A stretch of 64,000 nt of DNA from Klebsormidium nitens (taxonomy: Eukaryota > Plantae > Klebsormidiophyceae), in contig DF237232.1 in assembly GCA_000708835.1 (NCBI GenBank), positions 49,307 through 113,306 on the forward strand, read 5' to 3'. This document shows positions 740 to 58,740 of this stretch, piece by piece; positions within the stretch are counted from its first letter, which is position 1; each line of letters starts with the position of its first letter. The position numbers were made by a program, and so were the translations under genes. The notes beneath the pieces are model-generated. The model did not search any database and had not been told where the DNA came from. It saw only the letters and a list, made by a program, of their open reading frames with translations.

Positions 740-1630
740 CTGACAACTCAGGTACTATAAGCGGCCGCGCGGCGCTGACCATCGACGACATACGTACATG
801 TGCATAATTGGTCGTATTCATGCGCATGATCGGGAACGGTTCAACAGTTCGCATTAAACTGCATGGCAGTCTAGTTATAGGTGCCGTTCGTTCTGCAAGA
901 CGCAGCCCCGACATCATTGCAGGCGCCGGTCTGCAATGATAAGCATAACTTGTGGTTTTTCTCCTATATGCATTGTGAGGATCAACGTACGAGCGCAAAT
1001 CGATCCCGTTGCAATTACGTACACGTATCCAACTCTCAGGTACTTTGAGGGTGGTCATAGATAAGCAGACGGTTGGGTCGTGCTAGCTGCGGGGCCGCCG
1101 GTTATGCCTAGGTCGGCTTCTTGCCTGCAGAAGCTGGGCCGGGCGCAGCTGCGTGCAAGATTGAACATGTCGTTCCACGCGAAACATATGCGCGAAACTT
1201 ACAGCTTGCTTAATGAAAGTGCATAATGTTGTACAAAATTGTTCGAAATCCGTGAATGATGCAGCTGTGCAGCGCAAGTCCAGCGCGCGCGCTGTGGATC
1301 AAAATATGGCCCGGCGCCTAGGACCCCGCACGTCAATCTGAATTGGTACTTCGTTGAAGCCGGGCAAACGGAGTTCGTATAAGGGGTTGAAGGACTCTGA
1401 CTGCAACCAATACATTGAACATACCACATCCACGAACATAGTACCGTCAGTGATTTGTACACTGGCTCGAGGCCTGCGGGGTTGGAACTTTGCAGCATCC
1501 TCATGTACATGCATGGTCTGGCGGCTGTGAGTCCTAGCTAGCTCCAGCGTGGCGCGCCTGACCGCGGTACACACGGCGACAGCAACGGCCGTGTCCTAGC
1601 TCGCGGTTCAGCATCCTGCGCGCCAGACTC
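740..1630. other. Palindrome-dense convergent spacer tract A
   Basis: Lies between the stop of gene 1 (+) and the stop of TPPP (-). Hand count of 16 palindromic 4-mers in 781-900 (about 7 expected for uniform sequence). Perfect 14-bp palindrome CAGCGCGCGCGCTG at 1281-1294. Boundaries are approximate. Confidence 0.7.
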
Positions 1631-2156
1631 ATGGCGGCAGTCGTTCACCCGCCGGAGAAGCGTCGTGCACAACGTGCAATGCCATGTTGCTTGAAATGTG
1701 CCGGTCCATTCACTCGAGTCTCGGTGCTCATTCCTTTTGTAACAAACACTTCTATTTGGTTCATAGTAGTTCCCTTCTCCATTCAGTCACTGTCACAGGA
1801 AAACAGAACCAGGTCTGGCAGCAAGCCTGTCGTGTGTGCTCGCGTTCTGTGTATGTTACACTAAGATATCATACCAAGCCTCGTAGACGCGACGAGCTAT
1901 CCGAAGTAGCGCCGCCAACCGCTCTAAAGTCCAAAAGTGGAGTCACAACCTATGCTTAATCTCTCTTCGCGTTGATCTCCTCACATCGAGGCGAGAGCTT
2001 CTTCAACCCTGCCTGCATTCCTACCCCATTTAGATTCAAGAAAAGGACTGATCATCGTCCCGGCTTATTCAAGCAGTCGGTCATTGTGTTGGCTGTCCTG
2101 TAGCAGTCCGCCCGGCCGGGATTCCCGGGCGCCCTGCGCTCTTCCTTGGCACGTGC

Positions 2157-5100
2157 CTAGTACTTGTCGTTGATCTTGATCCCGCGGATGTCGGACGCGG
2201 TGCGGTCCGCCAGGCTGGACAGCGTGATCTTGTTGTCCACCGTCGTCGGGCCGCCCTTGGCGTGCACGCCCTGCGCCAACCACCACTCGCAGACGTCAAC
2301 CACACACAAACGTCGTGTCATCCGGCAGGCGGCAAGCGGAACCCATTTTATGCAATGAATGCCTTCATTGAGGGACTGTTGTGATGTCCGAAGGCATCGT
2401 GTTCACAAGCAAGAGGTACTATGGTGGGGCGGTTTGTCTCAAGCCGCAGCGATAAGCCACGGATTGGCAGTCCTCCAGTGTCCGCCTGGGCGGAACCCAA
2501 AGCAAGACAAAGGAGGCAGTCGTTCTCCCGAAGACAGCGGACTTGAGCGGGGCCGGGCGGCTCACGGTGTAGAGCGCCTTGTCGTCGTGGAACTTGACGG
2601 CCTCCGCGACGGTGCCGCTGCTGGAGGGCCCCTTGGCGGCGACCACCTTGGCCTCCACGTCCGCCGCGCTGCACCCCTTGCTCTCCGCGATGGCCGCCAG
2701 CGCTGCCTGGAACTGCAGGTACAGAAGACGGCCCACACCAGGGTGAGTGAGAGTTTGCGGCGGAAAGGAGGCAGGCGGACGAGGGTCAGAGCAAGCAAAG
2801 GGTGTGACACGCGTTTAGTCGGCGCAAGGCATTCCGAACCATGTCTTGGTCTCAGAGGGCAAGGGTTCGTGAGGGCAAAACGGCAAATGTGAGCCTGCGG
2901 CACGCTGCGGAGGGTTTACCTGGCTGAAGGTGATTTTGCGCTCGCCCTTGGGCTTGACCTTGGAGAACACCAGGTCCACGCTCTGCACACCGCGCACGGC
3001 GTCAGCGGGGCCGCCGCCAGCAAGGGGCCGTGCCTGGCTACGGCTTGGCACCAGGGAAAAGCTCCAGAACAACTCCCGCAACCCCGGAGCTCTGAATCAA
3101 CTTGGACAAAGCGACGCGTCAAGCGGACATATGAGTCAGACAAACCGCGGCAACTTCGGGCCTTGTAACTACGAGGACGCGGCAGGAGGTTCGGGCCGCG
3201 CGTGCTGACCGTGGTGGTGAACTTTTTGTCGACGAGGCCGCAGTCCTTGCACAGCTTCACGAACTTGGCGCCGTCCATCTGGTTCACCGGCTGCACGGGG
3301 CGACCAGCACAGGCGTCAGTACAAAGCGCGGCAGAACTTGAGCGCCCGCAAGTGCCGATGCAAAAGCAAGTGACCAGCGTTTTGATTCCTGGGCGAGAGC
3401 GTTTGTCCGTCCTCGCCCGCGCGCGCGCTCCTGCGGCTGACCTTGCCGGAGGAGCCTGCGCCGAAGGAGCAGAAGTCGTCGAAGACGTCCTGCAGGGAGC
3501 CCCCGGTGTAGGACCCCGAGATGCGCTTCTCCGCCTTGAACGACGACTGCGACGACAGCGCCGCCTTCTTGGGGCTGCCGCCCGCAGGCTCCACCGCCGC
3601 GTACCCGCCCTTCTCCGCGCGGTCGAACTTGGGCTTGCCCTCGTCTGGACACAGCGTGACAGCACGAAGTCAGAAAACAATTTCTGCGCACAATAGGGAG
3701 ATGAGCAACAGGGTATCGGTAAACGCGGTGGGGACATCGTTTGGACATGATACTCGCTCGTTGTGGGATTCCACTTAGGAAGGCAGGTGCAAACAAATTG
3801 GCTAATTCGAGGGGAATTGAGTTGTTGTGGAGATGGTTCCCGACGAAGGCAATCGACTTTGCAGCATGGCCTCTAAGGTCGTGCGAAACAAGCTCTACCC
3901 GACTGCTTCTTTCGGGAAATCGTCAAGAGACCGGCTGAATGTTATGTTTGGGCCATTATATCTGTCCATAATGGCTCTCGACGACTCTTGGGCGGATGCT
4001 TTCCGCGCTGCGCCCAGCGGCCTCACCGCTGAGCCGCTTGGGCAGGCCCCTGACGTCAGCCGAGGAGCGGTCGGCGAGGTTGGACAGCGTGATGACGTTG
4101 TCCACGTTGGTGGGGCCGCCCTGCACGTGCGTGCCCGTGTACAGCGACTTGTCGTCGTGGAACTTGTTGGGCTCCGCTTGCTGCACGCACCCGCACCGGC
4201 CACGGGCATCAAGAGGAGCCATGACTACAGGCGTGAAAGTGAAACGACATGCAGTCTTCTATCGCTCTTCGTCTGCCCACCATTGCGCCCTTGAGGGCAC
4301 AGCACCAATTCTCTTTAACCACGTGGGGGCTTCTTCAGCTGCACCCGTCATCGTACAAGGCCAGGGTGTTATGAAGCTCCGTGAATTCAGGCATCCTTAA
4401 CGCAGCTTTTTCAGGCTCTGGCTAGTTCGTTTCCTTCTGGCTGTTCCTTACAGTGCCTGAGGAGGAGGGCCCCCCTGCCGCGACGGCCTTGGCCACGATG
4501 TCGTCCAGCGAGGCGGCCTTCTTTTCGGCCACCAACTCGAGCGCCTTGACGAACTGCACGTAGTCGATCTTGCGGGCACCCTGCAGGACAGTCGGAAAAA
4601 AGGTCAGTCACAAGGGGGAAGTGTCTGAGACGGGTGACAGGCAGGACTTCTTGTTCGCGTTGTACCTGGTATTCTTTCCAAACCAGGCCCCAGGAGTCCA
4701 CGAAGAAGCCCATGAAGCTTTGGCCCAAAGTGTCTGTTCCGTCCAGTTTCCGTTCAGTACAGCATTGCCACCTACGCTTGCACCCACGAGTCTCCAACAT
4801 CCCGGCCAAGAGCCTGTTTGGGTGACCAATCTATTCAATTCTCTGCTTTTACCATTTAGTGACTGCATGAAATATCTCGTATGTATCTTCTTTTTTCGAG
4901 GTGAGACAGGCGTATGATTTTAGGACGGCCCCATTCATCTGACGCCCCTTACCTTGGCTTTGGCCTTGGCGTACGTCAGGTCCACATCGGTGGTGGTAAA
5001 CTTCTTGTCCACAATCTTGGTGTCGCGGCAAAATTTGGCGAACTTGGCCCCGTCCATCTCCTCCACCTGCACACATACACGTGCCGCACATTGTCAGGGA

Positions 5101-5788
5101 TGCGGGGAGGAGCGCAGAAGGAAAGCTGCAGCCGGCAGGCGGGTCCAAAGGAAGGCCAGCCGCAGGCGGTGACAGTGGTAACACCTTTTGCTGCCCAGTG
5201 ACTGCCTGTTGTCTACCTCACAGCGTCTTCACTACCCCCTCCGGCATTCACATTACCCCTTGCTTCAGCATCCTTCTGTTCCAACTTATCCTCAGGGATT
5301 CGAGAAAGAAATGGTGGCAATAGAATTGAAAGCCGATGAATTACCCTCCTCTGATCTTATGACTAAAAGGGAAATTGTTTGCTTCAAGACCAGAGTCTCT
5401 CTCAGAGGGCCTGTCCTGCCAAGAGAGGAGGCTAGCAGTCCATCACAGTGCTCAGTCATGCTTCCTGCCAGCAGCATTGCAAAAGGTCCGACCACCGAGT
5501 GGACCCCTTATTGCGTACTGGAGGCGTACTGAGGCCTTTGCCCCCCAATGCCCCAATGATGCTTTGTCCGCCTGTCATTTCTCACGTCTGCCTCCTATCT
5601 ACACTGTCAAATTTATACCGTCTTTGTCAATATTACAGACATTACGCTGGACCCCTCACACCACATGCGTCTCGCTGAGGCTTCGCTCATTTGGCACTCA
5701 CTCGCTTGCTGCTTCCGAAGGAGCAGAAGGTGACAAACAGTTGCGCCAGTTCATCGGCATGGGGGCCATTGTAGGAAACGGGAGCCAT
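2157..5788 (-). CDS. TPPP: Tubulin polymerization-promoting protein (TPPP family) with two tandem p25-alpha domains, about 363 aa
   Basis: Nine phase-consistent exons with GT-AG boundaries: 5702-5788, 4953-5066, 4452-4580, 4027-4180, 3442-3644, 3210-3290, 2920-2982, 2566-2712, 2157-2270. Two copies of F.sFcSFG...MDGAKF.K.C.D...DKKFTTT.VDL...K.K....RKI and of KFHDDK.LYTG.H..GGPT.VDN.ITLS.LADR, which are p25-alpha hallmarks. Confidence 0.92.
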
Positions 5789-6887: not shown

Positions 6888-9557
6888 ATGGCGGACCAGC
6901 GCTTGGTCGTCTCCTGCCCGTCGGACACAAGCGGGGGCACAGATGTGCTGACGGTTCTCGGTGGCAAGTCGTCCTGCCGCCGCAAGTTTGCCATGGCGGT
7001 GCACCTAGTGGATGCGGCAGGGACGCTGGTGCCCCGTGACCTCGTCCTGCACGCCGCCGTGGTGTATCATCACGACCACTCTCTTGTGCTGCGTGGGGAG
7101 AAAGCAGCGGAGAGTCCAGTGTTTACAACCTTCAATGGCATTGAGTATCCTGCCACCGACAAGCCAACCCGTATGATTGCAGGAAGGGCCGCATTCAAGC
7201 TAGCTCTAAGCCTCCTGTCCTCCAAGTGCGACAACAGCCTGTTTGCCATCCAGTTCAGCGCACAGTACGCTCCAGGGGCGGAGCAGCTGCTGCCGCTGCC
7301 GCAGGCTGCGTACTCGGGCCCCATCCGGAGCATCTCGCGCAAGAGGAACAGGGTGCCGGGCGCAGGGGGCGGCCACCCAGGTAGGCAATGGAACTACAGC
7401 AAGCCAGCCCCGCTTGCCAGTCTGCTGCGGTGGTGGTCAGCTCGGTTAGTCCGTGTGGAAGCAGGGTTGCTGGTTCTGAGAGTTTGAGTGGTGGACCGAA
7501 TGTACGTGCTTGCCTTCTGCACCATACATTGTGAACTGGCCACTGCGCATTGCTTCATTCGCTGCGAACCTGCACTTTTGAAACTGCTCATACTCAGAGG
7601 CCTCATTCGCTGGAAATGAGTCACCAAATATGCTGTTAACACTTACGTGTACAATGTGTAAAGAGCAGGTCAGCAATGTGATGCTGGAAGACGCACAAGC
7701 ATTGGTATGGATATCCTTTGCACCTCGCATTGGCTTGCCTTGTCTCCAGCCTTGTCACCGAGCCAAGCAGTCCTGCTTGAACGTGCCCTGTTGAACATGG
7801 CTGCCAGGTGGGCTAACACGCGGCTTGAATGTGCAGGCTATCTGGCGGGCAGCCTTCTTGACGAGCTTCCCATCCTGAGGTCCCCTGCGTCCGGCTTTGA
7901 GCAAGAGCAGAGCTCTTCCCCCAGGAAGAAACTGAAGCCCGAGGAGGAGGACGAGGACGAGGAGGACCCAGATGTTCCAGGTCAGAGGGGCAGGTATGGC
8001 TCCCAACAACTTATTTCGGACTCTGCTAGGTTAGATTGTTGCGTGATTAAAAGCTGCTGATTATCTTATTGGCGGCGCAAGAAGTTGATGCTTCAAGGTG
8101 ACAAGGTGATGCGCAGGTTGGCTTAGAGCATGGAAGGAAGGCCCTGATTTTGCACCTTGAGGTTGCAGGTGGCCAGCTTTCCAGGCAGGCCAACTGAGGA
8201 CTGTTTTGATGCTGACAGCCTGCTTTGGGTTTGCAGCAGTCCAGCTCTGCCTTTGGAAGGGGCCAGTGCCGCATCATCCGGAGGGGCTGACCCTCCAAAG
8301 CAGACGCATGCAGAGGCTCCCATGTCGAGTGCCCCACCAGCTGCAGGCCATCCCACAGCCCAGGACAGCATTCTGGGTAGGTGCACTTCTGACGGGCCCG
8401 GTTGCCTCATAAAAACGCCTCTCATTCCATGGAAATAATTATTTCACAATCAAGTCTTGAGAAGACTGAGGGCTTGCAAAGCGCCCTGGGCGTGCATCTT
8501 CTGTCTGCTTGTGTCTCAAGTTCTGTGAGTGAAGAGGAAATATGGCGTGAAGCGTCAGTTCTTACCCGCTCTCGTTCTTTCCCCACCAGGCGCTCGTTTC
8601 CAAGCTCTGCACCCCGCTCCCCTTCACCCTGGCCCTGCCGCTACCCCTACCGGGGACACACCCAGGAGCGCTGGCGGGCCCCCCGTCACCTTTGCAGACC
8701 TGGCATCCATGCTGACCCAGGCAGGAGCCTTTGCGCCAGCTGCCCTCCGGTTACCAGCAGGAGACCCCAGCTCGCCCTCACTTGGAGCGGGGCCCTCGTC
8801 GGGCTCCTTGCCAGGCATGAGCGGCGAGCGCGACGGCCTGGCGTCCCCCATGACTCCCTTGACGTTGGACGCCCTGAACCAGGCCAGTGCCATGGCGGCG
8901 GCCGCCAAGATGGCCGCAGTCATTGGGAGAGCGCTGGAAGGGGGCGGGCATGGAGGCGAAGGGGCGAGCGCGGCAGAGATGGAGCAGCGCAGCCTGGACG
9001 AGGAGGAGCGTACCTTGCAGGTAGGGGGTGATTGGTGGTGATACAGCGCCCCAGACTCGCTGGATATCCCTTCAAATTGTTTGCTTGTGCCAGGAGTTGC
9101 TTCTGTTTGAAGCTGCCTAGCCCTCCTAGCCCAATCCAGGTGCAACCAAGCCTACACTCGTTGGCTGGTGCACGATGAGACAGTTGCATGCAAAGCTCTT
9201 TTTGAGTGCTTATGGCTCCGAGTCTGATCTGCGGGTGAGCCTAGTCTGCCAAATAGCTGGGGCAAGAGCTAAGCCACTACGAAGAAATCCTTGTCGTTGT
9301 ACGAGCCTGTTTGATATCGACCAAAGCGCTGCCCGTTCTTGCCAAACCCTGCCTCACGATGTTGCTTTCAGCAAGTCAGTCTTTTCTGTCGTCTTTTGCA
9401 GTACATGGAGGCCAGCCTGGCCGAGGTGACATTGGAGCTGCTGCGCCGGCGGGAGGAGCTGAGCGTGCGGCGGCGCAGGTACCTGGACCACGAGCAGCGC
9501 ACGAGCGTGGCCCGCCAGTCGCGCCTCATGTGGGCGTGTCCGCCCACGGGCCACTGA
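6888..9557 (+). CDS. CudA-like / plant SH2-domain protein A/B (SHA/SHB)-like protein lacking an SH2 domain, about 500 aa
   Basis: Phase-consistent exons 6888-7380, 7750-7980, 8185-8376, 8590-9020, 9402-9557. Exon 1 encodes SPVFTTFNGIEYPATDKPTRMIAGRAAFKLALSLLSSKCDNSLFAIQF...YSGPIRSISRKRN, resembling from memory the conserved GRASFKLKISQLSSKCDNRLF...PIRCISR block of plant SHA/SHB. The C-terminus is low-complexity or coiled-coil. The true start may lie upstream. Confidence 0.6.
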
Positions 9558-10049
9558 AGCCTCCACGGTCAGGCTCGCTGTGAGTCGAGTAGCATCATCT
9601 GGATCAGATATGCAACGGGTTGTTGCACTATATGGGAACTAGGACTGACCTCCTTACTAATCAGGCAGGCGGGCTTCAAGTAAGTTATTGGTGTCTTGGT
9701 ACTGGACGGGTTGCAAGCTTTCCAGTAGGTAAAGGTGTGTGTGGGGACACGTGCACTATGCTAGCAATGATCCTAAGACTCAGGTACTAGAAGTGAACCG
9801 ACCATCTGGATTCCTTGACAACTGAGGAAGAAGCAACTCAACATGCTCCGACTGAGCATTCTTCTAAATTACCGTGCACGAAAGCAGATGACTGCCCCGA
9901 CTTGGACAGATTGCAATACAGACTCGTGCAGTGAATGGATAATACGATAGTCACTAAGCTTCCGTTGAGGCAGTCACCGTTAGCCACAACCATGGGTTGT
10001 GGCTAGCCCGAGGCGCCCAATTGCACACAGCATCTCACATCCTTCTATG

Positions 10050-11290
10050 CGAGATCTTGATTCCAATGAATCAGGAGACAATTACTGTATGGAGTAGACG
10101 GTAAGCGTGCTTCGATCGACAAGCTGACATATGATAGTGCCCCGGCCCTCCTTTTGAATCACCGTATACGTTCCATGTACATGCATCATGGCAGTGCATG
10201 CCATACAGATTGTTGCATGCGATCTGCACAGTAGTGTGAGTGGGCTGCGGATCCGATATGATTGCTTTGAACGGCCTGCTACAATGATGCATCATTGCCG
10301 CGGGCACGTATTGCATGGAGGAATATGTGCGTGCCGGGTGAGGAGGGACCCGCCATGCCTTATAGCTTATAGTGCTCAATATCATGGGCCATCCGTACTG
10401 TCCCTGATCGAACAAGATCGATCGAGTTCGATCACGTATAGTAAAGCTATTGTTTGTGTGTCGCGCGGCATGCCACATATGTGATCGCGCTCCACATTCA
10501 ACCAATTGGCGCAGTCGATCGCTGAAACAATGATATCGTATTGGCCCATAATCCACTTGAAATGTTCACTTGATCGGATATAGCTGCGTGCACCGCGGGA
10601 GCGCGCGCTTCCAGATGCGCGTGCACATGTTCGTTCGGCATATATATACTACACCTAACATGATTGCTAGCTCTTGAGCTGATTGACAACCATATCCATC
10701 AAATCGTGACGTACTGATGCAGTGACAATTGCGGATTGTTGTGGTGCGGTAGGTGGCCCGCCGACTCGAGCTAGCCCGCCAGATACAGCGTTATTGTTCG
10801 CCATAAGTTGGTCTATGCAATGTATTAAGTATCTTAGATTTTCGATGACGGTTGTAAACAATTTGGCAATTGCGTTCGCAGGGTTCGATGGGCCAGCTAC
10901 TGCGTATTTTAAGCAAGACAATTGCAAGTCGATCCGTTACCTGTGAGCGCAGCATCCGAATTCGCACTTGTTCAACCTCTCCGACTCAGCGTCCAGCCAC
11001 CTCAAATGCACCGCGCGCGTGCTCCTCTCCTGACGGTTATTTCCATGGTTATCTCCTCTGTCCGATCACCCGGCGCGCAGAGCAACTACTGCGCTAGGCT
11101 AATGTAGCTACTGCAGCTTAACATTTTGCTAACTTAGAATTATGTACGCTTACGCAGCAAGTCGTCATCTGGTATTATGCAACCAACCAAGGCTAGCTAG
11201 ACACGTATTCTGACCCTTTTGAATCAAAGAATATTTACGAATCCTTCAGTATCTAGGCTAAGGCAGCAGCAGCGACATAATTAATTTGAG
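10050..11290. other. Palindrome-dense convergent spacer tract B
   Basis: Lies between the CudA-like gene (+) and the O-FucT gene (-). 17 palindromic 4-mers in 10141-10260. Contains CATGTACATG at 10174-10183 and GATCGATCGAGTTCGATC near 10416. Boundaries are approximate. Confidence 0.75.
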
Positions 11291-11295
11291 CTAAG

Positions 11296-14200
11296 CTAGT
11301 TTTGGGAGCTGCACTCCGCTCTGCACCGCCCGCCCTGCGCGAGCCGGCCCTCGCATGCCAGGTAGTCCACCCAGTGGTCGCTGCGATTGCCCAGGATGCT
11401 CTTGCCGCCTGTCTCCAGCATTGGGAAGTTCTGTCGGGCGAAGCACGCCCCCCCCGAGAGCAGCTCCAGCTCGTCCTTCCTCAGCTCCGCCCCGGACTCA
11501 TTCACAAAGGGCGCCATCCCCTCCTCCCCCTCGACATCTGCCCGCCCCTGGAGGAGCGCCTCGAGGCGCGTGGCCCCCCGCCCCGTGTACTCGCGCGACT
11601 GCGCCACCTGCATGCTCCAGCTGGACTCGCTGGTCCCCAGGAACACGGCCCCGCGCTGGCTCACCTCCTGCTCCACCAAACTGATGAACGACGCGTGCTC
11701 GCGCAGCAACGCTCCGAGCACGTCCGCCCCCTTTTCTCCGACCTCCCGTTCCACTTGCGGTGTCTCCCCTATTCCGCTGGTAAACACTCTGGCCGCCTGT
11801 CGGGTAGGTTCAGTCTGCCCCGCATCGCGGCAGTGCTCGAGGACCACCACCCGCTGCACCGCGTCGTGAGCCAGCAGCCCCGCAATTGCTCGTTCCACCA
11901 GCCGGCAGCTCTCCGGCCCGCGGATGAAGCCGTCGGTGGATAAGAAGAGCGTGGCGAGCCCCGCCGCCCGCATGCGCTCCCCCACGGCCGCCACGAAGTC
12001 GTCCACGCTGACTCCCGTCACGACGGCCAGCATCGGATCACCACAGGACGCAGGCGAGAAGTCGGCCGCGACCTGCCGCCATGCGTCGTGAGGGGGGATG
12101 AGAGACGGAGCCCAGAGTGCGCCATAGTTGCAGCGCACAAAGCAGAGGTGGTCCGTCGGCTTGTCGCGGCAGCGCAGCTCCTCCACGCGCCAGTGCAGGG
12201 CCAGGTAGGGCGTACCACCGAGCAGCTGCTGCTGGACGTGGTCTGCGTAAGCGCGCACCTGCGGCAGGGACGGAGATGAGAAAGATGACAAACAAGGCAG
12301 GCCAATAAGCAGGCCGTGAGATGCGTAGACACGATATTCTCGGGGGTGAACCACGAAGGTGAAGGTCGAAGGCGGCCCCTGAGGCGATACACGAATCAAA
12401 AACTTCTGTCGTGTCTACCAGCCCGCTAGCCACCACCCCAAAGCATCGTTACTGAATTAGACATAACCTCGATGTAATCCAACTGCGAGTTCGTCAAAGG
12501 CACCAAATTTTGATGGGAATTTTGCTAGTCGAGAGAATTTGGTGGCAGAGAAGATGAAGAGGGGCTGAAACGGGGACACCGGAGTCTGGGCCACTTTCTT
12601 CGAGGATCTTAGCCACGTATGGGGCCGAAAGGTGCCACCTTTCTGCAAAACAAGGCCATCGGTGCTTAGGAAAAGTGATGGCTTTTCGACGTAAAGGGTT
12701 GACTGGTAGAAAGGCTGTCTCTTCATTCAAACAAGCGGTAGTGTAAGCTTACCTTGTCGGACGGCTTGACGCTGGAGTAGAAGAGCCGCCACGGCTCCCG
12801 GAAGCGAAGCCCCAAGAAGGTGGTGGTCCCTAAGCAGGCCACAGCGCGGGACGAGCTGAACCAGGCCTCCAGGCTGGCGCGGCTCGACAGGCTGGACGAG
12901 GACGCGCGGGGGGAGACCTGCGGGGGGAGGAACGAGGAAAGAGATGAGCGATCCGCCAGTTGCATGTGCGGGGCGAAGTTCATGAGGGTGCTGACATCAG
13001 CATCACGCAAGGTCAGCCTCTGCGAGGAAGGCCTCCGGTGTTCAAAGCAGGGGCGCTTGTTGGCCCAGAAAAAGCGGGTCGATCAACATGACACACCGCT
13101 CCTTTCCATATCCATACATGTGTTTGTCAGCCACTGTAAACGAGATACAGGCTTGCCATTCCCTATAGAAAGGGGCCGCATGTGGGGGGTAAGATTCCTC
13201 TGGCCTTACACCCAACACATAGGCCAAGGACATGGAATGAAGACCATTCTATTCACAACTTTTGATCCCGCCGTTTCAGGACAAAGGTCATGAAGAACCC
13301 GATTCATGACATTTTTGACCTTTGTGAAGCACTTTGAAGAACCCGTTCTCCAACGGACACATGCCATCCCTCCCCGTTCCGGCATCACTCACTTTCCTCC
13401 CTAGGCGCAGCCCATGCGCTGCTGCGTAGTCGTCCCATGTCGGGTACTTGAGGCCTGGCCCGCGCTCGAGGAAGTAGCTCTCCATGAAGTGCAGCTCCTC
13501 CAGCAGGCCCCCGCACGCGGCGGCGCACTCCTCCAGGGGCCGCACGCGCACCACTGGCCGCAGGCTGTCCACCAGAAAGTGGTCCGACCACCTGCAATGT
13601 GACCACATGGGGGCTTAGCAGGGCTGACAAATCCGCTCCAAGCGCAGTTCGTCCAATCCGGGGCAGGACCTCCCAGTAAGTAGAAGCTAAGATGTGACAC
13701 TGAGTGCTTCCAGTACAGCGGATTGGAAATGGAGCAAACCTAACTTGGTTCATTCCTTTATTTCACCACCTTCAGATGAAAAGCAGACTGTTGTGGGGTT
13801 TGACCTGCAGCAAGGTCTAAAGCCATGCCCCCCAGAACGCGTTTTACTCCAACATAGTGATTGACTGAGATCTCCCAAAGGTGTAGAGCCCAGTTGATGC
13901 TGGGGTATTTGCGGCTATGAAGAGGACGCAGGTTTAGGTGGGGCTCTCGGTAGAAGAAGCGTGGGGGAAGACATGGCCAGGGGCAAAAAGGGAGCAGAAG
14001 GGGTTGAAGGTGACCAAAGGCGACAGCTTTTCCCAAGAATGGGTGGCTAGAAGACTACACGCCCAAAACGTCGTCATGATGTCATCAGGTCCTATTGCAT
14101 GCACACGGTTTCATGTGGCGCCATCAGGCGGGGGTGGCAGCGTTTGACAATCTGCAGAGTGCTGCTTGGCAGCAAGTAATCATGTGATGTTTGGAACTGT

Positions 14201-14835
14201 AACTACAATGCTGGCCCAATGCTGATCCTCACGATGCTGATCACCACTCCAGTCAAGCTGTGGTGTCATCATTTGACCTTTGGATGTAAAAGCGAAGTTG
14301 GAAGAGCGCCTCACTTTGGCACTTGGTTCAGGTCATCCCCTCCCTTGTGTTCCTTGGGCTGGGCCAGCGGGTTGGCGAGGCAGAGGGTACGGTTGAGTAT
14401 GCGTGCAGTGTAGGCTGCAGAGATGAACTCCTGCAGCTGGTTCCCCACCCCCCACCTCTCGTCCACCATGGGGAACAGAAACTGCTCCGGCCCATCAGGG
14501 CTCGCGGCCCCGGCATCCCAGCGATCCCCCCTCGTGATGGACCCTTCACCGGAGCTGCTGAACGTGACCGTCTGCGTGACTGTCACGGACGTCTCTGCGA
14601 CCCACTGGCCCTTGCGCCACTTGAAGGCGGGTGTGCTGTTCTTGAGCAGTGCCAGGAGCTGCCCCGCCAGCCCCGCCGCGGGCAGGCCCAGCAGGCCCTC
14701 GTCCACAGAGCGCACGCCTGCGGGTTCGCGCCACTGGAACAATGGCACTGCAACCACCGCGGCCAAGAGAAGGAGGCCCACCAGAAAAGCGCGCAAATAA
14801 AGGCGGGCAGCGGAGGGCTCAGGGCTGATCGACAT
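11296..14835 (-). CDS. O-fucosyltransferase family (GDP-fucose protein O-fucosyltransferase-like) type II membrane protein, about 615 aa
   Basis: Exons 14315-14835, 13393-13591, 12753-12917 and 11296-12258 join in frame. N-terminal transmembrane segment (LYLRAFLVGLLLLAAVVAVPLF). Family motifs G.GNQLQEF..A...AR.LNRTLCL, YLALHWR, LFLSTD and VEQEV...G.VFLGT..SSWS. Confidence 0.8.
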
Positions 14836-15003
14836 TGTGGAGCCCCTGCATTACTCCAGGGACCACCATGGAGCAAGCAAATGGGTGCATGGCGGCCCTG
14901 CCATGGGCATTTCACAGAAGGACGAAGAGCAGGCGTTGCAGAATCCAGCAAGGAATTGCAAGGAAATCGCCTTGCACAATTGCACGTGCTGAAACGCACG
15001 GCA

Positions 15004-15060
15004 TTAGGGTTTCGGCAACTTTCGGCGTCAAATCAAAAACTTGAATTTAAATTAGGGTTT
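15004..15060. promoter_or_regulatory. Two telo-box elements (TTAGGGTTT, reverse complement AAACCCTAA) in a 455-bp bidirectional promoter
   Basis: TTAGGGTTT at 15004-15012 and 15052-15060, between the O-FucT ATG (14835, -) and the myotubularin ATG (15291, +). Telo-boxes are established plant promoter elements. Confidence 0.55.
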
Positions 15061-15290
15061 GAGAACGCACGTGACTTCAGAGCAATTGGCTGGGGTGCTG
15101 TGCACTACAATAGCAGCTCAGTGCCAGTAGCATGCGCTGGCAGTGCCCAGTTGGAGGTGAACATGTTCTTTTCCTTTCCTTGAAGAACAGCGATGATGGA
15201 GGATCTGTTCAGCGAGGTGTTCTTGGAGCTCTCAATGGCCTGTAGTCCTACATATGGGCCTAAGTTGGTGGCGTGATTTCAACCAAGCTA

Positions 15291-18200
15291 ATGGAGCTGT
15301 CCGACAGCGGCGGCCTGCTTGGCGGTCGTTGGCTGAGCGTTGAGGTGAGGCATACTGGCCACCGGTGGTTTTGCAGCGTGCAATTGTACAATGTCTTGTC
15401 GAGTTGATTACCTATCTTTCGATCGAAAACCTGATGCTGTTCGACATACTCATAGGCCCAAGAAGTGGCGAGCTCTCGGGCCACCCGTCCTCTGAAAAGA
15501 GTGATTCGAAAACTTTTCCAACCTGATGGTGCCAAATGTTATCCTCCCGCAGCCATCTGCCAGTGCTGCCGCAGTGTCTGAGATCACCGCCAATTTCCTG
15601 CTACCAAATGAGGGAGTTGTTGCACAGGTGAGCCCTACCCTGGTCACCTGTCACGTCGACCTTGTGACAAGACATGCGCTGTTTGTTCAGCTGACGAAAG
15701 GAAATTATACTCTCAGCTGAGCAGATTTTAGAGAAAGCTTTGAATGGCACTTTCCTAGCCGTGTGCTGCACAATGATCCTGGCCATCGTCACTTCCTTAC
15801 TGAACCTTGCCGTCCGCGACTGGGCAGGTCTACAATGTGACGCTGGTGAACACTGGGGAGGATGGCATGCTCCTTGTCACCAACTTCCGCCTCGCCTTCC
15901 TGGCCGCCGGAGCGGCGCTCTCTCCGGCCCCAATCGCGGATATCCCCTTGGCGCTCATCGACCGCGTCACCAAGAGCATCAGCAGCAAGACTGCTCTGGC
16001 ACTGGCGCGCGCACACCGCGGCTCCTATGGCGAGAATGGCGTTCGACTGATGCATGTGGCGGCTAAGGATTTGCGCCATGTGGTGCTGGCGTTCCGGCCC
16101 CACACGAAGCAGCGGCGGCTCATCTTTGACACACTGCAGCGCGTGGGCAAGCCGGCCAGGCTGCAGGAGCTGTACGCATTTGCGGGGAGCGCGGCACGGT
16201 CGACGGGGGGTGGGGGTCACACGTTTGGCATGGAGAACGCCTTTGGCCGGCTGCGCTCGGAGTACGAGAGAATCCTGCGACAAGCGGACGAGAAGCTGGT
16301 GAGGGATGCATGTTTGCCTGGGCGACAACCCAAGTTGACCATGTCTTTAAGGGCTCCGCTCACAGCTTCTCTTATATCAAACCCGCGGAGTTCTCTTTAT
16401 ACTGAATCCCTTTTCTAAACCATTTCAAATCTGTAGAATGAAGTTCCGTGTCTCGTGTGCAGCCCGCATCATCTGCCGGGCGGTGGCGCATCAGCGATGC
16501 CAACTCTGGCTACATGCTCTGCACGAGCTACCCCTCGCAGCTGCTGGTCCCTGCCCCCATCAGCGATGCGGAGCTGCAGGCGGCCGCCGCCTTCCGCGGG
16601 CGTGGGCGCATCCCCGTCATCACATGGGCGCACGCCAACGGCGCTGTCCTGGCACGCTCCGCACAGCCGCTGGTGGGCCTCATGATGAACAGCCGCAGCG
16701 AGGCGGACGAGGCTCTCGTGTCCAGCCTCTGGAGGAACACCGACGCAGGCCCTGCGAGCGGGAGCCAGCGGGGGTCCGGGAGCCAGAGCGTTGTGAGCGG
16801 GCAGGTGGGGGGGACGCCCACTCGGCAGGGCAGCTTCAGCGGGGTGCTGGAGGCGAGCCCGCGGCGGGCTCATCGGAAGCTGTACATCGTGGACGCTCGG
16901 CCGAGGAAGAACGCGTTTGCCAACGGGGCCATGGGGGGGGGTTCGGAGGGCGCCAACTACGCGCACTGCGAGGTGGTGTTCCTGGGGATTGAGAACATCC
17001 ACGCCATGCGCGAGAGCTTCAATTGCCTCGCGCTGTACATTGACAGCTACGGCGCAGGGGCGGGTTTCGACATGAGCCGGCCGCCCCCTCCCTTGGACAC
17101 GAGCTGGCTGGCGCACAGCGGCGCGCTGCTGGCGGGGGCAGCGTGGGTGGCGGGCAAGCTGCAGGAGGGCTCCTCCGTGCTGGTGCACTGCAGCGACGGG
17201 TGGGACCGCACTGCGCAGCTCACCGCGCTCGCGCAGCTGCTGCTGGACGGGCACTACCGCACCTTCGACGGCTTCCGCGCCCTGGTGGAGAAGGACTGGC
17301 TGGCGCTGGGGCACCCGTTTGCGGAGCGGCTGGGCCTGCCGGACGCCAGCGCGGCGGGGCAGGGCAGCATCAACCTGGGGGCCAGCATGTGGGAGAGGCG
17401 GCCCAGCGACGGAGGCACGCAGGACGCACGCAGGTGAGGGGCGGGGGGGCATTTGTCACAGCCTTGGCAGCAGACGCTTGTGTCGATGCCAACGTTTGAG
17501 AGCGGCGTCTCGAATTGAGTGAAATCGCTCCCGTCACTTGGGCAAAATGAAGTAGCGTGGAGCCGAGTTGACAGGCTCCCTGTCGCCACGTCTCGAATCC
17601 CAGAGCATAACGACTGCGTCTTTCCAACATGCTTCTAGGTGAAACTGCCGCCGCCTGCTGGTTGTCGTCCGTCCGTCTAGGGGGACAATTTTACGCTTCT
17701 GTTTTCAATAGTCGACTTCGTACGTCGTCCAGTCAGAGGCAGATATGATGCAGTCCTTGCTAAACATTTGATTCGGTTCGCTTCTTTTTTTGGATTGTTT
17801 TGGGCGTCTCTGGAGCGTTGATAGGTACACTGCATCAACAAAAAAATTGGCCCTGGACTTAAAGTGGAACATTGGCCTGTGAAATCTCCATGTAGTCCCG
17901 CTTGTTAGCTTCAACCCGTGATTTACTCTTCTGGCTGGAGGGCAGGAGTGTCAATGGATGAGTTTCATTTCTTGTAACTCTGAAGCTCCTTGCTCATGGC
18001 CGTCGGCATGGAGAAAAGGAAAGACGTTTCGGCCAGCGCGAAGATTGCATGCTCGCAGCCGCCACTTCTGTGCAGCTGCAAGTTTCGTCCGTTTGTTGGC
18101 ATCGTCTTTTCTGTGCAGTCTCAACCGGTATTTCACGACAGTGGTACTTTGACTTCTCCATAACCTCTACAGCGCGATCGTCTCCTCACCCATGCACCTA

Positions 18201-42751: not shown

Positions 42752-44196
42752 GACCCTCCCCTCTTATGCTCCCCCTGCCTTTGAATACCTCGCTCTTCCT
42801 GGAGTAGCTTGGAGCGCTCAATTGCTCTGACAAAAGCACTATAACTGGAGCTTTTGAGACCTACAGCGGCAGCTTCGGCTCCAGACCTGCTTAGTCCTGC
42901 CCTGAGCAGAGAACCCTTTGCAGCGACCAAAAGCTCTACTAGGATGTCAATCTGCGCTTGCCCAAGCCCATAGTAGACAGTAGTAGAAGCCCTTCTTCAC
43001 AGGAAAACGGTCCCTACCAAATCGCAAGTTGGCAAAGAAGCCAGAACTCGGGAGCACTGAGCTCAGGAGGACCTTAGCGCGCTCTCTGTTCTGATTCAAT
43101 CACCTACAGGCTACAGGCTACAAATGAAGCCGCTGAGTGCCCCAGGGCCAAGGCTGAACTTGAAGTTGAAGCCTGTGAAGGCTGTTCAAAGAAGTCTGTA
43201 GACTCGTGTAGAGAGACCCTTGCTTTGGTGAGAAGTCACAGCTCTAGCAGAGAATCTCAGCGCTGGTACCTACCGTAGCTGACTACCGTACGGTATCCGC
43301 CTCAACCCCCCCACGCGCCGGGAATGGTCTAAAACGAAGTGTCAATGGAATCTTCGACAGCTACCTTGGGGGCCCATTCCCATTTCGCATACGGTATGAG
43401 TCGAATGTAATACCTACTGAATGCACTGACAATGCTACAGCTACATGCTTATTAAGTGGAGACCAGATTGGCCCTACGCCCGGTAACAACCGGTGTGAAC
43501 GATCAGCGGTACCAGAAACGTGATACCGAAGACCTCAGGCTCTCCGCGAGAAGCTTGACTGTTTTCAAATGAACGTGAGTCGTCGAGAGTCGCGAAGTTT
43601 CCCCTGAGCTGAAAGAATTTACAGGACTGCTTCTAACAACCGTCCATGGAGGATTGTGAGGGCCATTTTGACGGACGGATCTTAGCCTCCGAAGAGAGTG
43701 TGTAACTTTACCTTCAAACTTGAAGTTGAATCATGCAATCGTCCACGTTCGTGCAGGCCGGCCAGGACAGCTAATTCTGATCGAGCTCAGCTGATTCTGA
43801 GTCATGATCGAACTTGGAAGTTGAGAGTTCAGAAAGTGGAGCAGAAGGGGCTCAAGACAGCCCCAGACCGGCTTGCATGCACTCCCCCTGCACTCTCTGG
43901 GGAGTGGTGGCCCCTTCAGACGTAGGAAGGAACGGTGGAAGCTCCTAAAGAAGTCGGGTCGACACAAGGGGCCGAAATTATCTTCAAAGCCTGCGCTTCA
44001 TGATGGATAAGAGACGTGAAGCTTAGACGCTAAAGCTGGTTCCTGCCGCGGTCAGTGATTCGGGCCTGGTACAATGGGGGTGGTGTGTCTCAAGTGAGAT
44101 GCACTGGCCCGCAGTATTCCGCCTCATGTGACATTCGTAGAAGGTTCGTAGAGCTGTGATTGTTGAAAGCTGAGTGGCAGGGTAAGTTTCCGGAAA

Positions 44197-46520
44197 ATGG
44201 CACGGGGTAGGCGTGCTCCGTCAAGAAACAGCAACACAATGCTGTCCATCATGGTGGTACAGGTGAGGAACTAGACATGTGTTGCTCCTGACAAACGTGT
44301 GGATGTTTCTTCTTCTTCTGTGAGGAAAACGAGTTTTCAACGGAGACGAGACCACTGTAAACCAGGCTCCGGGCATCATGTATGTGTTGGCATTCGCTTC
44401 ATTGTGCCAGCAAATGGGTCCAGACTTAATATGAAAGAGTTTTTGGAGTGGAGACCATTGTTCCGTCAAGGTTGTAATAAAAACTGGTTGCAGGGCCCTC
44501 TTCACCCCGCACTTGGCTGTGTTGGTTGCAGGCCTTGACCCAGTTCATGAAACTTGAGCAGAAGCCTCCGGTCACGGTAGCACTGATCCTCATCAACGCG
44601 CTCATCTTCTTTCGGCCCGGAGATCTTGTGGAGATTGTGCCGTCTGTTGCCGAGATTTGCCTAAATCCATACTTGGTGCTTAAGGTGGGTTGTGATGTCC
44701 AAATGAGCATATGTATCTACGTTGGTGATCTTCTTCATCCTTATCTAGATGCTTCAGCTCAAGGACTTCATCAAAAGCATTATGGCCCCCACCAGAGAAG
44801 CTACGCCTTGGGCAATTTCTCCTTGTGAAGGTCTGACTTCGCTTGCAAGTTTGTTTCGGATTGTTGCTTCAGTCTTTCGGCCCTTTCTTTAAGCCTTCCA
44901 CACTTAGAGGGCTTCTTGTCCACTTAGTTGACTGGGCAGGAAGAGATTCCCACTCTGTACTTGTCTGTTGGTTCAAGGTTCTGAAGGTAGTGGTGTAGAG
45001 GCCTGAAGGTTCAAGGTTCTGAAGGTAGTGGTGTTGAGGCCTGAAGGGATCTTTGATTGTCCATCTGCACAGGATGGAAATCTTAGAAAAGGGATTTAGT
45101 TTTGACAAGCTCCTCAAGACGTTTCAGGGATCCCTAGAGCAAGTCCCACATTCCACAGGTACTTTCCAGCAGCATAAGTGGCTGACACGAGCGTCATCTG
45201 CCCTTTGCCACAGAATCGTGACTGGAAGCGGCTCCTGTTATCCGCCTTCATGCACGCTGACGAAGCCCATCTTACATACAACATGGTCTCTTTCCTTTGG
45301 AAAGGGGTACAACTGGAGGGTGCGCTTGGCAGCGCCCAATTTGCCAAGCTGATAGCCCTGCTTACACTCCTCTCGCAAGGATGCACCCTGCTGGTTGCCA
45401 AACTCATAGCGGACCAGCTGGGAATCAGGGTAGGCTCGCCCGCTTGCTTCTTATCGCTCCCTGTGAGATTTTGACTGTTAATCTTTGAAAAGGAGGATTC
45501 AATCCAAGCTGGTCTTCAGAGGTGCCCTGGCAGGTTTTTGCCCGCTTGGATGAGAGCTTTTCTTTGCATGCCTTGTGCTGCCATATTCAATACGAAAGGC
45601 AGGCAATTTCTTCTTGGATTGAGAAGATGAATCGGAACTCATGGGTCCTACTGAAGACCATTTTGGACTGCCATGTGACGGGGGTGGTCTCTTGAACGTA
45701 TGGTTGGAGCTGTTCATCAAAGAGCGTCTGAAAGGGGCACCTCTTTCTTCGTTCACTATTGGCTGAACTGCCTGTGCTCATGCACACGCAGGAACCGTTC
45801 TACCACCAGTGTGCTGTCGGGTTCTCGGGGGTCATCTTTGCTCTCAAGGTGGTCCTCACGTGGCACTCCCCCACCTCCAGCACCATCGCCGGCTTCATCA
45901 TCCCCACCCGCTATGCTGCATGGGCGGAACTCGTGGCCATCCAGTACGCGACTCCACAAGCTTCCTTTGTGGGACATCTTGGCGGAATCTTGGCTGGATT
46001 GATACTGGTCTATTTTCCGAGGATCTTGCCACGTGGCCTGCCCTTTGTGGTGGGGCTGAGAGCACTGGCCCCCACCACCGTGGCGTCAGTGCAGTCAGGA
46101 CGAGTCGAGGAGCAGCAGGCGCCGCAAAGGAGGACGCGATGGTTTTCCAGCTGGGGTACCGCAGGTTCAACGGAAGCGCATGTGCGGGATCGAGGGAACG
46201 CAGGCCTGGGGCAAACAGGCAGCCAAGAAGGTTCGGGATTGGGAGCAGGGTTACGAAGTTTCTTCACAGATTGGATCAACCCTCGGAGTACACAGGTTGA
46301 ATGGTCTTGCCCAGCTTGCACCTTCAGGAATCGAGGAGAAGCCGACTTTTGTGAGATGTGTGGGGAAGCCGGAGGCACCACCTCTGGCATGCATCAACGA
46401 ACCCCGAGTGCAGTGCAGCAGAGTGATGCAAGTGACGGTTATGAAAGGGTGTCTCCTGCTGAGAGTATACGAAGGCGCCGTTCGGAAAGGTTTGGTGAAA
46501 CTTCAACGGCTCGGAGATAA
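44197..46520 (+). CDS. RBL14: Rhomboid-like intramembrane protease with a C-terminal RanBP2-type zinc finger (RBL14/RHBDD1-like), about 387 aa
   Basis: Exons 44197-44262, 44532-44684, 45214-45429, 45792-46520. KPPVT..LI..N, WKRLLLSAFMHADEAHL.YNM.SFLWKG..LE, catalytic GFSG (Ser) and SF.GHLGGI (His), zinc finger WSCPACTFRN......CEMCG, terminal RRRRSERF. Confidence 0.92.
44970..45047. repeat. 38-bp tandem duplication (2 copies, 1 mismatch) in RBL14 intron 2
   Basis: GGTTCAAGGTTCTGAAGGTAGTGGTGT[A/T]GAGGCCTGAA at 44970-45007 and 45008-45045. Confidence 0.9.
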
Positions 46521-46719
46521 TCTTGCACTGAATCACTCTTAAGTTAAGTTTCAGTGAATATAGTGACATCTGGATGTTTCGATGTTGTTGAGGGCTGTAC
46601 TGGCCTGAACGATTGTTCTTTCTCTGTGAGATGATCACTGCACGTCCTTGCGTGATGTTTGTTGCGTAATTTCCGGGTCTCTGCATGAGGGGCCTGTGAT
46701 GTGCAATTTCAATTGGTTG

Positions 46720-47720
46720 GACACTCTGTGCATGTTGTATGAGCTAGCCCCGGGGCGCCCGGAAGCCTTCAGATTCTCTATGATTTATTTGTTGTCATAT
46801 GAGCTAGATGTCTCATACTAGATCGAGGTTGACATGTATTTGTTTAGGAATGATATTTGCCTCAACATCGATCAGTTTCTCATGCTCAGAGGCTCTGTCG
46901 CTTCAAAGCCGGTGCATGTATCATAAGGAACGTTTATGCAGCTTTCAATCGAATGCTGCGCAATCAATCGCGTGCCGGGTGGCATCTTTCTAGGTGCATC
47001 ATTGGCATGGTCCATATACATATTAAATCAGCTCCGGCCGAAGGAATGACATGGTTATGCAGTCTACTTAGTATAGTACGCGTTGCACTATAACTTCTCA
47101 TTCTTGCATGATCGAATCTTTGAAATGAAATTATATTTCAATCATGCCCATGGCTATGCACGAAGTTGTGCTAGTTGAGTGTATATGGAGCTTCGATGGT
47201 CTCTTTTCGTAACGCCGTAGCCAGTGCGGCCATAGGCTTCTCATGGCATACAATTGTTGTGTTTGAAGATGTCTGCTTCTCTATCAACTTACGACTAATG
47301 TGAGCCTAACGACACAATTACAAACACGAGGCTGACGATCTGCCAATCCCAGCGCTGTCCGGGCCTTGTCTTCAACATAACCGAGGGCGTTAGTAGCTAA
47401 ACGACGGATTTGTACAAAGGCAACATGACTGACATGCGTGAATTCGGCAAGGCAGAACCCGGGCCGGATTGCGCCGGCCACATGCGTGCTAGTAGGCCTG
47501 CGAATGCAGGGCAATTACTCGAGCAAGTGTACCTAACCGCATATATAGCTTGCCTAACTTGTTCGCACCGGCCAGGCACGTTCCGATGCTGCCATTCAAA
47601 TGTGATGTGCCTAATAATCAAATTGTGCCATGTATTGATCAAGTTGTTGTTCAAAACATATACTAGCTTCGATCATTATGAAATCCACAGTCAGGCTCAT
47701 CGGATCATGATGCAACTTGA
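46720..47720. other. Palindrome-dense convergent spacer tract F
   Basis: Lies between RBL14 (+) and the ANTH gene (-). 17 palindromic 4-mers in 46981-47100. Boundaries are approximate. Confidence 0.68.
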
Positions 47721-57707: not shown

Positions 57708-57759
57708 ATATTCATTGAGTTGTATATAGACTGAATAAGTTGCACTGAGCTCGCTTAAT

Positions 57760-58740
57760 CTGGTTACTTACTGAACAGCATATACAGCATAGCCTTCAGC
57801 GCGTTGATTGCATCAAGCGCCAAGTAGTTCGCACCCCACGTTCTTAATGCAGGAGCCCATGAAGTGTGGTCGCCTTTGATTCTTATAAGCTGTCGCCCCT
57901 TTTTTTTCCTATTCTTTTGTCTAAAAACCTTTGCAAAAAGGGGGCGCCCCAGGGGATTTGCCCTTGTATATAGTGCCTGGCCCGCATCCCCGCTAGACTT
58001 GAAAGATGTGGCTCCCTTAAAGCCGCATGAGCAAGCTGATCGGATTGTCTCCTTAGTGCAGTCGTCCTTGTCACTGTACTCAGATCCCTATGTAATCAGG
58101 CGGATGGAGCTCGACAAAGAAGTTTTCATGGTAGCATTGCCACTATGCGCATGCATGGTACGCCGTGCAGCACGCGGCCGCATATATGCGCGCCGTACGT
58201 TGGGCTAGCTCGTCCCACGCGAACGACATAATTTTCTTAAGCACATATGCACGGCCCGGCTGTTAGTGCATATCATATGATCATCTTCATCCGCAGATTG
58301 TCGTGATTATTATCTACTTAATTTATACCATGCAACCCATCATGCGATGCGCAGCGCAGCCGCAGCTAGCTCTAGCTATATATGCGCAACCTGACTGAGG
58401 CTTAATCCGATCCCACCGTATTTGTCCAACTTAAGCCCATGGTGGATTGATAGCTTGCACCGTACAGATACAGCTACCTGTACTGGTTGGCGTGAAATCC
58501 AACGCGTGGTCGAGCCGCGGCCGACTGGATGATTTGCCGTTAGATGCATACATCTCGGCCGTTATACAGACTTAGATGTTCATTCCCGGCTTATAACAAT
58601 CGACAAAATTCACGTCCCGCGGACAGCTCACTGTCACATCTATATGGTACACTTTACTATCAAAGTCTCGGTAGCTGTGATCATGTACTCCTAAGGGAAT
58701 GCTTAAGCAACATCATTCGCTCTCAACTCCTTTGATTTTT
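57760..58740. other. Palindrome-dense convergent spacer tract G
   Basis: Lies between FMO (+) and SOD (-). 25 palindromic 4-mers in 58141-58260. 12-bp palindrome CGCATATATGCG at 58179-58190. Boundaries are approximate. Confidence 0.75.

Follow-up and report, generated by a model that had tools for sequence, protein, structure and literature searches.

Does the DNA between two converging genes carry a signature of its own, and, if it does, is that signature a selected signal or the scar of a process that keeps rebuilding the place? This question is raised by a 64,000-nucleotide stretch of the Klebsormidium nitens genome (GCA_000708835.1, scaffold DF237232.1), referred to here as the window. 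An earlier note on this DNA had described a palindrome-dense tract in each of its seven tail-to-tail spacers, and both blind segmentation and null models bear this description out. Our data demonstrate that in the termination gap of converging genes, and almost nowhere else, dyad-symmetric words of 2–8 bp are over-represented regardless of their sequence. As the earlier note had also proposed, the tracts are strand-symmetric, diverse in sequence, distinct from transposon copies and tied to tail-to-tail junctions.

Seven tracts of short dyad symmetry

A blind likelihood segmentation of the window, which reports a score and the number of palindromic 4-mers (pal4) per 100 nt for each segment, ranked the seven tracts ahead of every other segment, within about 100–400 bp of the coordinates proposed earlier. 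For each tract we also give a z value, which sets its palindromic 4-mers against dinucleotide-preserving shuffles of the same tract. The highest score belongs to tract C (20859-21849; score 46.3, 14.0 pal4 per 100 nt, z 6.5), which lies between a myotubularin gene on the plus strand and a Hus1 gene on the minus strand. Tract B (10112-11357; score 40.1, 12.3 pal4 per 100 nt, z 5.3) lies between DG1062_N (+) and O-FucT (–), and tract A (718-1686; score 35.4, 12.8 pal4 per 100 nt, z 6.4) between a plus-strand gene ending near 700 and a p25-alpha gene (–, with the end of its coding sequence [CDS] at 2157 in GenBank). Tract E (37691-38357; score 28.3, 13.5 pal4 per 100 nt, z 4.0) separates PH_TRF2_HOY1 (+) from DUF789 (–), tract G (58147-58688; score 26.3, 14.2 pal4 per 100 nt, z 4.5) an FMO-like gene (+) from a Cu/Zn SOD gene (–), and tract F (46633-47674; score 21.9, 10.9 pal4 per 100 nt, z 4.4) a rhomboid gene (+) from an inferred minus-strand gene. 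Tract D (30157-30405; score 13.5, 14.9 pal4 per 100 nt, z 2.7), between a zf-CCHC gene (+) and an NF-YB-like gene (–), is the shortest and weakest, with z 1.4 across the whole spacer and 2.2–2.7 in its core. The tracts, to which no strand is assigned, are 0.25–1.2 kb long, with a GC content of 0.43–0.54 and about 49% overall.

Pooled, the tracts hold 765 palindromic 4-mers against 514 expected from a dinucleotide-matched model, an observed/expected ratio (O/E) of 1.49 (z 11.6). The O/E is 1.77 for palindromes of 6 bp (pal6), 2.38 for those of 8 bp (pal8) and 2.5 for those of 10 bp (pal10), and in the other 57 kb of the window palindromic 4-mers stand at 1.01. Without any model, a 500-bp piece of tract holds 47–67 palindromic 4-mers, and one from elsewhere about 28. 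Hand counts in 120-nt samples, with which the observation began, had the direction right and the size too large, the samples lying about 1.5x over the tract mean of roughly 14 per 120 nt. The enrichment stays in every tract under dinucleotide shuffles and an order-2 Markov model, the matched-null check that had been proposed for it. Chance or base composition as its source is ruled out by mononucleotide, dinucleotide-shuffle, order-1 and order-2 Markov nulls, together with the behavior of base-balanced non-palindromic words described below. In a blind scan of 400-bp windows, 22 of the 27 with z of at least 2 fall within tracts.

Sorted by junction type, convergent spacers between coding sequences show a pal4 O/E of 1.38 (z 10.7) and a pal6 O/E of 1.67 (z 9.1), divergent spacers as a class 1.08 (z 1.8) and 1.31 (z 3.0), and genic DNA 0.99 and 0.98; the comparison is one of convergent with divergent junctions and cannot separate a property of convergent gaps only from a property of DNA beyond any poly(A) site. 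Equal enrichment outside convergent spacers, the outcome that would have spoken against the earlier description, is not what the divergent class shows, since it lies near background for palindromic 4-mers, but one of its members does share the excess. In the divergent spacer between DUF789 (–) and rhomboid (+), a lesser peak of dyad symmetry at 43401-44200, outside the seven tracts and without a strand, reaches an O/E of 1.6–1.9 and a z of up to 3.7 at only about 8 pal4 per 100 nt, and about half of it is found in RNA contigs. A further small peak of 117 bp with 17.9 pal4 per 100 nt occurs in another place of this kind, a divergent spacer at 61628-61744. The window outside the tracts also has a mild excess of longer palindromes (pal8 O/E 1.24, z 3.5; pal10 1.32) with no excess of 4-mers and 6-mers, which constitutes a weak window-wide background tendency for palindromes of at least 8 bp.

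What is enriched is not a motif. All 16 palindromic 4-mers are over-represented in the tracts, with O/E values of 1.12–1.80 relative to an order-2, maximal-order expectation, and the 120 non-palindromic word pairs have a mean O/E of 0.97 (Mann-Whitney p 1.6e-10 against the palindromes). The 20 non-palindromic words that are base-balanced (A=T, C=G) stand at 0.99 versus 1.48 for palindromes, and unbalanced words at 0.93. With every palindrome raised and the balanced non-palindromes at expectation, the signal is therefore dyad symmetry itself. No hexamer dominates in the tracts, the commonest (CATGCA/TGCATG) occurring 27 times in 6.7 kb. The symmetry is short: the next outward pair is complementary with a frequency of 0.38, 0.31 and 0.35 for pairs 2–4 and 0.25 beyond, and inverted 4-nt arms are at their maximum at a spacer of 0 (z 8.8) and reach background by a spacer of 4–5. 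It ranges over 2–8 bp, the longest perfect palindrome being 16 bp, and when 4-mer frequencies are held fixed pal8 is just 1.32x expectation (z 2.1).

Several simpler sources of such a signal were tried and rejected. Decayed long palindromes or fold-back copies are not supported, complementarity being absent past 4 pairs from the center. Self-complementary units are found in 18 period-4 tandem duplications versus 4.5 expected (other units, 19 versus 17.5), and this excess is a consequence of the 4-mer frequencies; the arrays represent about a quarter of the palindrome excess and are accounted for once those frequencies are fixed, which argues against simple tandem slippage as the chief source. 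Purine-pyrimidine alternation, correctly noticed from the start, has a step probability of 0.565 in the tracts versus 0.472, and 36 of the 78 alternating runs of at least 10 fall within the tract share of the window (10.4%). It is not the cause, RRYY and YYRR palindromes being enriched as much as RYRY and YRYR. Patchy composition does not produce the pattern either: strand-skewed patches reduce palindromes, AT- or GC-rich patches raise only all-AT or all-GC ones, and the mixed palindromes GATC, CTAG and AGCT are enriched on a par with the others.

The tracts show no excess folding. In 150-nt pieces, the DNA folding-energy z averages –0.19 in 40 tract windows versus 0.07 in 49 control windows (p 0.32), and energies no lower than those of shuffles mean that hairpins or cruciforms are not the point; a terminator of the hairpin or cruciform class is rejected on the same measure. 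Alternating runs, enriched as they are, reach at most 19 bp and are of mixed sequence, unlike the long (CG)n or (CA)n of Z-DNA-forming tracts. The view that cruciform or Z-DNA extrusion was unlikely is thus supported from both sides.

Transcript ends, turnover and rearrangement

To place the tracts relative to transcripts, we placed Logan contigs of four RNA runs, each from a different study, on window positions 9300-15299, an interval that covers one of the seven gaps. Contigs of DG1062_N (+) end at 9951-9996 and those of O-FucT (–) at 10802-10861, and three O-FucT introns are confirmed by RNA contigs. Between the two mapped mRNA 3′ ends lies an unstranded core of spacer B of about 0.8 kb (9997-10801) with zero depth in all four runs, a result to be read knowing that such contigs show presence better than absence. 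A possible hairpin with an 8-bp stem and a 3-nt loop (CCACAACC / GGTTGTGG) occupies 9985-10003, exactly where the DG1062_N contigs end.

The untranscribed core is the densest part of the region, with 12.8 pal4 per 100 nt and an O/E of 1.48. The 3′ untranslated region (UTR) of O-FucT (–) has 9.3 pal4 per 100 nt (O/E 1.23), that of DG1062_N (+) 5.5 (O/E 1.03), and introns 3.9–5.1 (O/E 0.78–1.00); with the DG1062_N 3′ UTR at background, a feature of the mRNA itself is rejected. Nine 3′ flanks oriented from the stop codon have 6–7 pal4 per 100 nt in their first 400 nt and 10–14.5 thereafter, an onset in agreement with the mapped 3′ UTR lengths of 400–490 nt. From the RNA ends at tract B and from this rise about 400 nt past stop codons, it follows that the tracts consist mainly of DNA that two converging genes leave between their poly(A) sites, the gap in which both polymerases have to stop.

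Related algae allow the history of these gaps to be followed. We compared the window with a sister species (Logan SRR23617307, loci L002 and L005), whose proteins are 83–87% identical, and with a more distant species from a JGI metagenome (loci L003 and L006), whose proteins are 68–70% identical. Coding sequences, introns and most divergent spacers align with the sister loci at 74–85%. The tract cores (9701-11070, beyond 20459, and 30004-30597) are unalignable with the sister species even at word size 7, and the same search still finds collinear blocks in a poorly conserved divergent spacer. On the O-FucT flank, homology runs for about 390 nt past the stop codon and is lost about 50–100 nt before the mRNA end. 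Core lengths change as well, with 1370 bp versus 790 bp in the sister species in one case and 593 versus 781 bp in another. DNA between genes in L006 and L003 gave no match to the window.

The orthologous places in the relatives are palindrome-dense too, for example L005 3262-4041, a non-alignable region opposite tract D. Regions of the relatives chosen solely for failing to align have a pal4 O/E of 1.47 in the sister species and 1.23 in the distant one, with base-balanced non-palindromes at 0.98–1.00. These alignments show that tract DNA turns over too quickly for sister species to have any of it in common, and that the signature is nevertheless kept at the same places. Fast divergence alone is insufficient for the signature, because the divergent spacer 32600-33440 is almost unalignable with its counterpart (L005 6189-7014) and has a pal4 O/E of 0.99. 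On this evidence we reject the idea that any untranscribed or fast-evolving spacer acquires the signature, although the picture is not clean, as the 43401-44200 peak is about half transcribed. A general feature of plants is also disfavored by a single, anecdotal Physcomitrium locus, where no comparable signal follows the orthologous gene. One further metagenome contig (L004, JGI 3300060285) stops 35 bp past the O-FucT stop codon, where the tract would start, and assemblies may be prone to break at tracts.

Gene order changes at the tracts. In K. nitens, the rhomboid gene adjoins tract F and the myotubularin gene tract C; in the sister species, these two genes converge on each other (L002 3-1523 corresponds to window 46000-46528 and 19974-20459), and the neighbor across tract C differs from that in K. 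nitens. This order would result from one inversion that broke in tracts C and F. Synteny is also broken at tract E in the more distant species, where DUF789 has the opposite orientation and is found 5 kb past the gene that flanks this tract on the left (L006 10716-20023 corresponds to window 37206 and 42412-38817). Both of the synteny differences seen against the two related algae therefore have their breakpoints in palindrome-dense convergent spacers.

The gene layout behind these statements comes from two sources. GenBank calls are available for window positions 1.3–24.8 kb (window position = 24836 – L001 coordinate) and place DG1062_N at 6888-9557 (+, stop 9557), O-FucT (KFL_002830150) at 11296-14835 (–, stop 11296), myotubularin at 15291-20264 (+, stop 20264) and Hus1 from its stop at 22242 (–). 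The exon open reading frame (ORF) at 11299-12414 (–, 372 amino acids) is 100% identical to K. nitens KFL_002830150. Outside this interval, orientations were taken from Pfam hits on exon ORFs and from sequence statistics. Pfam gives the plus strand for zf-CCHC on the left of tract D, PH_TRF2_HOY1 (stop 37237), rhomboid (stop 46520) and the FMO-like gene (stop 57707), and the minus strand for NF-YB-like, DUF789 and Cu/Zn SOD on the right of tracts D, E and G. The gene to the right of tract F, at about 47.8–53.4 kb on the minus strand, is inferred from splice-donor matches (14 minus versus 0 plus) and one codon-scored exon only. Taken together, the GenBank calls, the Pfam orientations and this inferred gene make all seven named spacers tail-to-tail.

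Two observations on the genes stand beside this. The window's roughly 15 genes alternate strictly in orientation, their junctions being convergent in 7 cases and divergent in 7, with none between positions 1 and 64000 that is clearly tandem. Random orientation would give such strict alternation with a chance of about 6e-5, and it could reflect a genome-wide organization into divergent pairs. At 2157-5788 (–), GenBank has two neighboring p25-alpha genes of 284 and 119 amino acids on the same strand, 200 bp apart; the gap aligns with the sister species in an intron-like manner, and the two calls may be one gene divided by annotation.

Signal or scar

A unifying model, which we favor tentatively and with somewhat less than even confidence, explains the signature as a footprint left in the termination gap by local turnover through break-and-rejoin events. 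Such an indel process would be blind to sequence and would add very short inverted duplications at its junctions, for which candidate routes are hairpin-capped ends opened off-center, end joining with snap-back fill-in, and hairpin-stabilized slippage of self-complementary units. Either the process would be focused on the untranscribed termination gap, or it would be tolerated nowhere else; its confinement to converging gaps might have its reason in topological stress, in collisions of polymerases or in a lack of transcription-coupled repair. The same breakage would make the gaps preferred inversion breakpoints, and a tract would be a by-product of how converging transcription units end and not a sequence-specific signal. 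We infer this as the most economical account, with high local sequence replacement being needed under any reading, and prefer it because the lack of sequence preference and a turnover faster than that of introns are hard to reconcile with a conventional signal. A mutational process had been among the three explanations first offered for the tracts, and the turnover, length changes, inversion breakpoints and absent sequence preference fit it best; the part that falls is long fold-back copying, since the symmetry extends to 8 bp at most.

Several points weigh against this footprint. The mutational event is read from standing sequence. The spacer 32600-33440, poorly alignable and at expectation for palindromes, implies that the process must be specific to the gap. 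Once 4-mer frequencies are fixed, little excess of longer palindromes or tandem arrays is left, and therefore the type of event is unreadable from the sequence. Mapped RNA ends come from one of the seven gaps only. Finally, a property kept in three species is equally predicted by selection on the property.

Such selection is the strongest rival, and we regard it as possible though unlikely. The tracts would be strand-symmetric termination or insulation zones in which the property is selected and no particular sequence is, and which stop or buffer both polymerases, with homodimeric roadblock proteins or a chromatin state as possible means. Position speaks for this: at spacer B the core lies exactly between two mRNA ends and is free of RNA in four runs, and the density climbs at about a 3′ UTR length past the stop codon. 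So does the retention of the property at orthologous places in three species despite the loss of sequence, and the window's genes alternate as though avoiding tandem read-through. A further point in its favor is that Klebsormidium expressed sequence tags contain no AAUAAA-like or UGUAA signal and no recognizable near-upstream poly(A) signal (PMC1868727). However, a shared or conserved motif is absent, and a set of 16 palindromic 4-mers that rise alike is unusable by a single reader protein. In addition, evolution is faster in the cores than in introns, the palindromes lack the length to fold and show no excess of folding energy, and the divergent spacer at 43401-44200 has the same excess. The symmetric terminator or insulator of the earlier note thus fits as to position but is weakened by the lack of motif sharing and conservation, the cores being unalignable between sister species. 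In a bolder form, to which we assign a smaller chance, Klebsormidium would end converging units by a sequence-blind dyad-symmetry code, in which kilobase zones selected only for strand sameness act as two-way terminators or insulators and as rearrangement hinges among alternating gene pairs.

It is improbable, in our view, that the tracts are substrates for a symmetric DNA modification, such as 6-methyladenine at ApT or another two-strand mark, or a chromatin boundary at unit ends. The AT dinucleotide is at 1.37x its base-composition expectation in the tracts, CATG and GATC are among the words most enriched relative to the rest of the window, and the location at unit boundaries resembles that of base J at convergent regions in trypanosomes. 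Yet TA- and GC-centered palindromes are as enriched as AT- and CG-centered ones, and no single modification accounts for both. The version of this proposal that invoked 5-methylcytosine at CpG is further disfavored by a CpG O/E of 1.04 in the tracts versus 0.73 elsewhere in the window; in K. nitens, CG methylation lies on active gene bodies (PMC5890265), and the two findings together argue against long-standing CpG methylation of the tracts.

We also doubt that purifying selection on two strands is the explanation. Oriented signals, such as a cryptic promoter, splice site or poly(A) site, would be purged from both strands of the gap, and, a palindrome being able to offend in one way and a non-palindrome in two, palindromes would become relatively enriched. 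This predicts what is found, a class-wide, sequence-blind palindrome excess only where both strands are read, and homopurine and homopyrimidine words are indeed strongly depleted in the tracts. However, for a 1.5x excess roughly one in three of all 4-mers would have to be harmful, which is hard to fit with a turnover faster than that of introns, and unbalanced words are reduced only to 0.93.

Decayed transposons resembling miniature inverted-repeat transposable elements (MITEs), or other foreign or repeated DNA gathering in safe intergenic sites, are very unlikely: cut-and-paste excision leaves short palindromes as footprints and plants often show safe-haven insertion at 3′ ends, but blastn at word size 9 finds no match between tracts or to sister-species tracts across this window and five related loci, as the earlier remark on the lack of long homology had held, long-range inverted symmetry is absent with complementarity stopping at 4 pairs from the center, the four longest tract ORFs have no Pfam domain, and there is no Rfam family at gathering score or tRNA in the window and no phage match.

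If break-and-rejoin turnover is what shaped the tracts, they would preserve, in exceptionally clean natural form, the traces of a break-repair process linked to the ends of converging transcription, and would give a reason why inversions in the Klebsormidium lineage break at gene tails. If instead they are selected, they would represent a terminator or insulator defined by symmetry instead of sequence, in an algal lineage often taken as a stand-in for the land-plant ancestor, and would bear on how compact genomes prevent interference between neighboring genes. Either way, the signature is a cheap, sequence-only marker of transcription-unit ends for the annotation of Klebsormidium genomes.

Comparison with known systems

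The earlier note knew of no named element class that fits, and this holds: the tracts match neither yeast-type repeats, MITEs, REP-like terminators and Z-DNA nor any Rfam family or tRNA. Our literature search returned nothing linking Klebsormidium to palindromes, gene orientation or intergenic structure, and the palindrome-rich convergent gaps of this alga are apparently undescribed.

Among described cases yeast comes nearest, with short, AT-rich inverted repeats that differ from the tracts in composition, scale and position. These repeats are over-represented around poly(A) sites and in 3′ flanks, and were analyzed with convergent genes (Miura et al. 2018, PMC6420913); that paper cites Strawbridge et al. 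on them. The likeness lies in a short dyad symmetry enriched at gene 3′ ends and in 3′ flanking DNA, and too short for cruciforms to be likely (PMC6420913). The yeast repeats are ApT/TpA-rich or A/T tracts tied to the poly(A) signal and lie within tens of bp of the site. In K. nitens, by contrast, all 16 palindromic 4-mers are involved, GC-rich ones included, over 0.25–1.2 kb of DNA of about 49% GC, and the enrichment begins at or after the mRNA end and not upstream of it. AT-rich repeats of the yeast type, or a UAUAUA efficiency element, are rejected on the GC content of the tracts and the equal enrichment of GC-rich, mixed and AT palindromes. A yeast-type location inside the mRNA, at or just upstream of cleavage, is rejected as well, the peak of tract B being untranscribed and the plus-strand 3′ UTR at an O/E of 1.03. 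The TATATA of spacer B lies at about 10641, inside the untranscribed gap.

Bacterial repetitive extragenic palindromic (REP) elements form a repeated family of hairpin-forming units of about 35 bp with a consensus. Like the tracts, they are palindromic DNA after genes, often between convergent ones, with proposed roles in termination and in the handling of supercoils (bioRxiv 10.64898/2026.03.23.713779). Unlike them, the tracts have no family, no consensus and no folding excess.

In trypanosomes, as in K. nitens, a special state marks the ends of converging Pol II units. The state in K. nitens is known from primary sequence, which is itself unusual, whereas in trypanosomes it is a chemical mark on ordinary sequence: the convergent strand-switch regions carry base J and histone-variant marks where the units end. 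P-nucleotide formation by hairpin opening, hAT excision footprints and the snap-back insertions of polymerase-theta end joining all give rise, where a break is repaired, to very short inverted duplications with zero spacer, whatever the sequence. These break-repair junctions match the 2–8 bp, sequence-blind symmetry of the tracts; they are known as single junction events, and what the gaps of K. nitens present is a standing composition on the kilobase scale.

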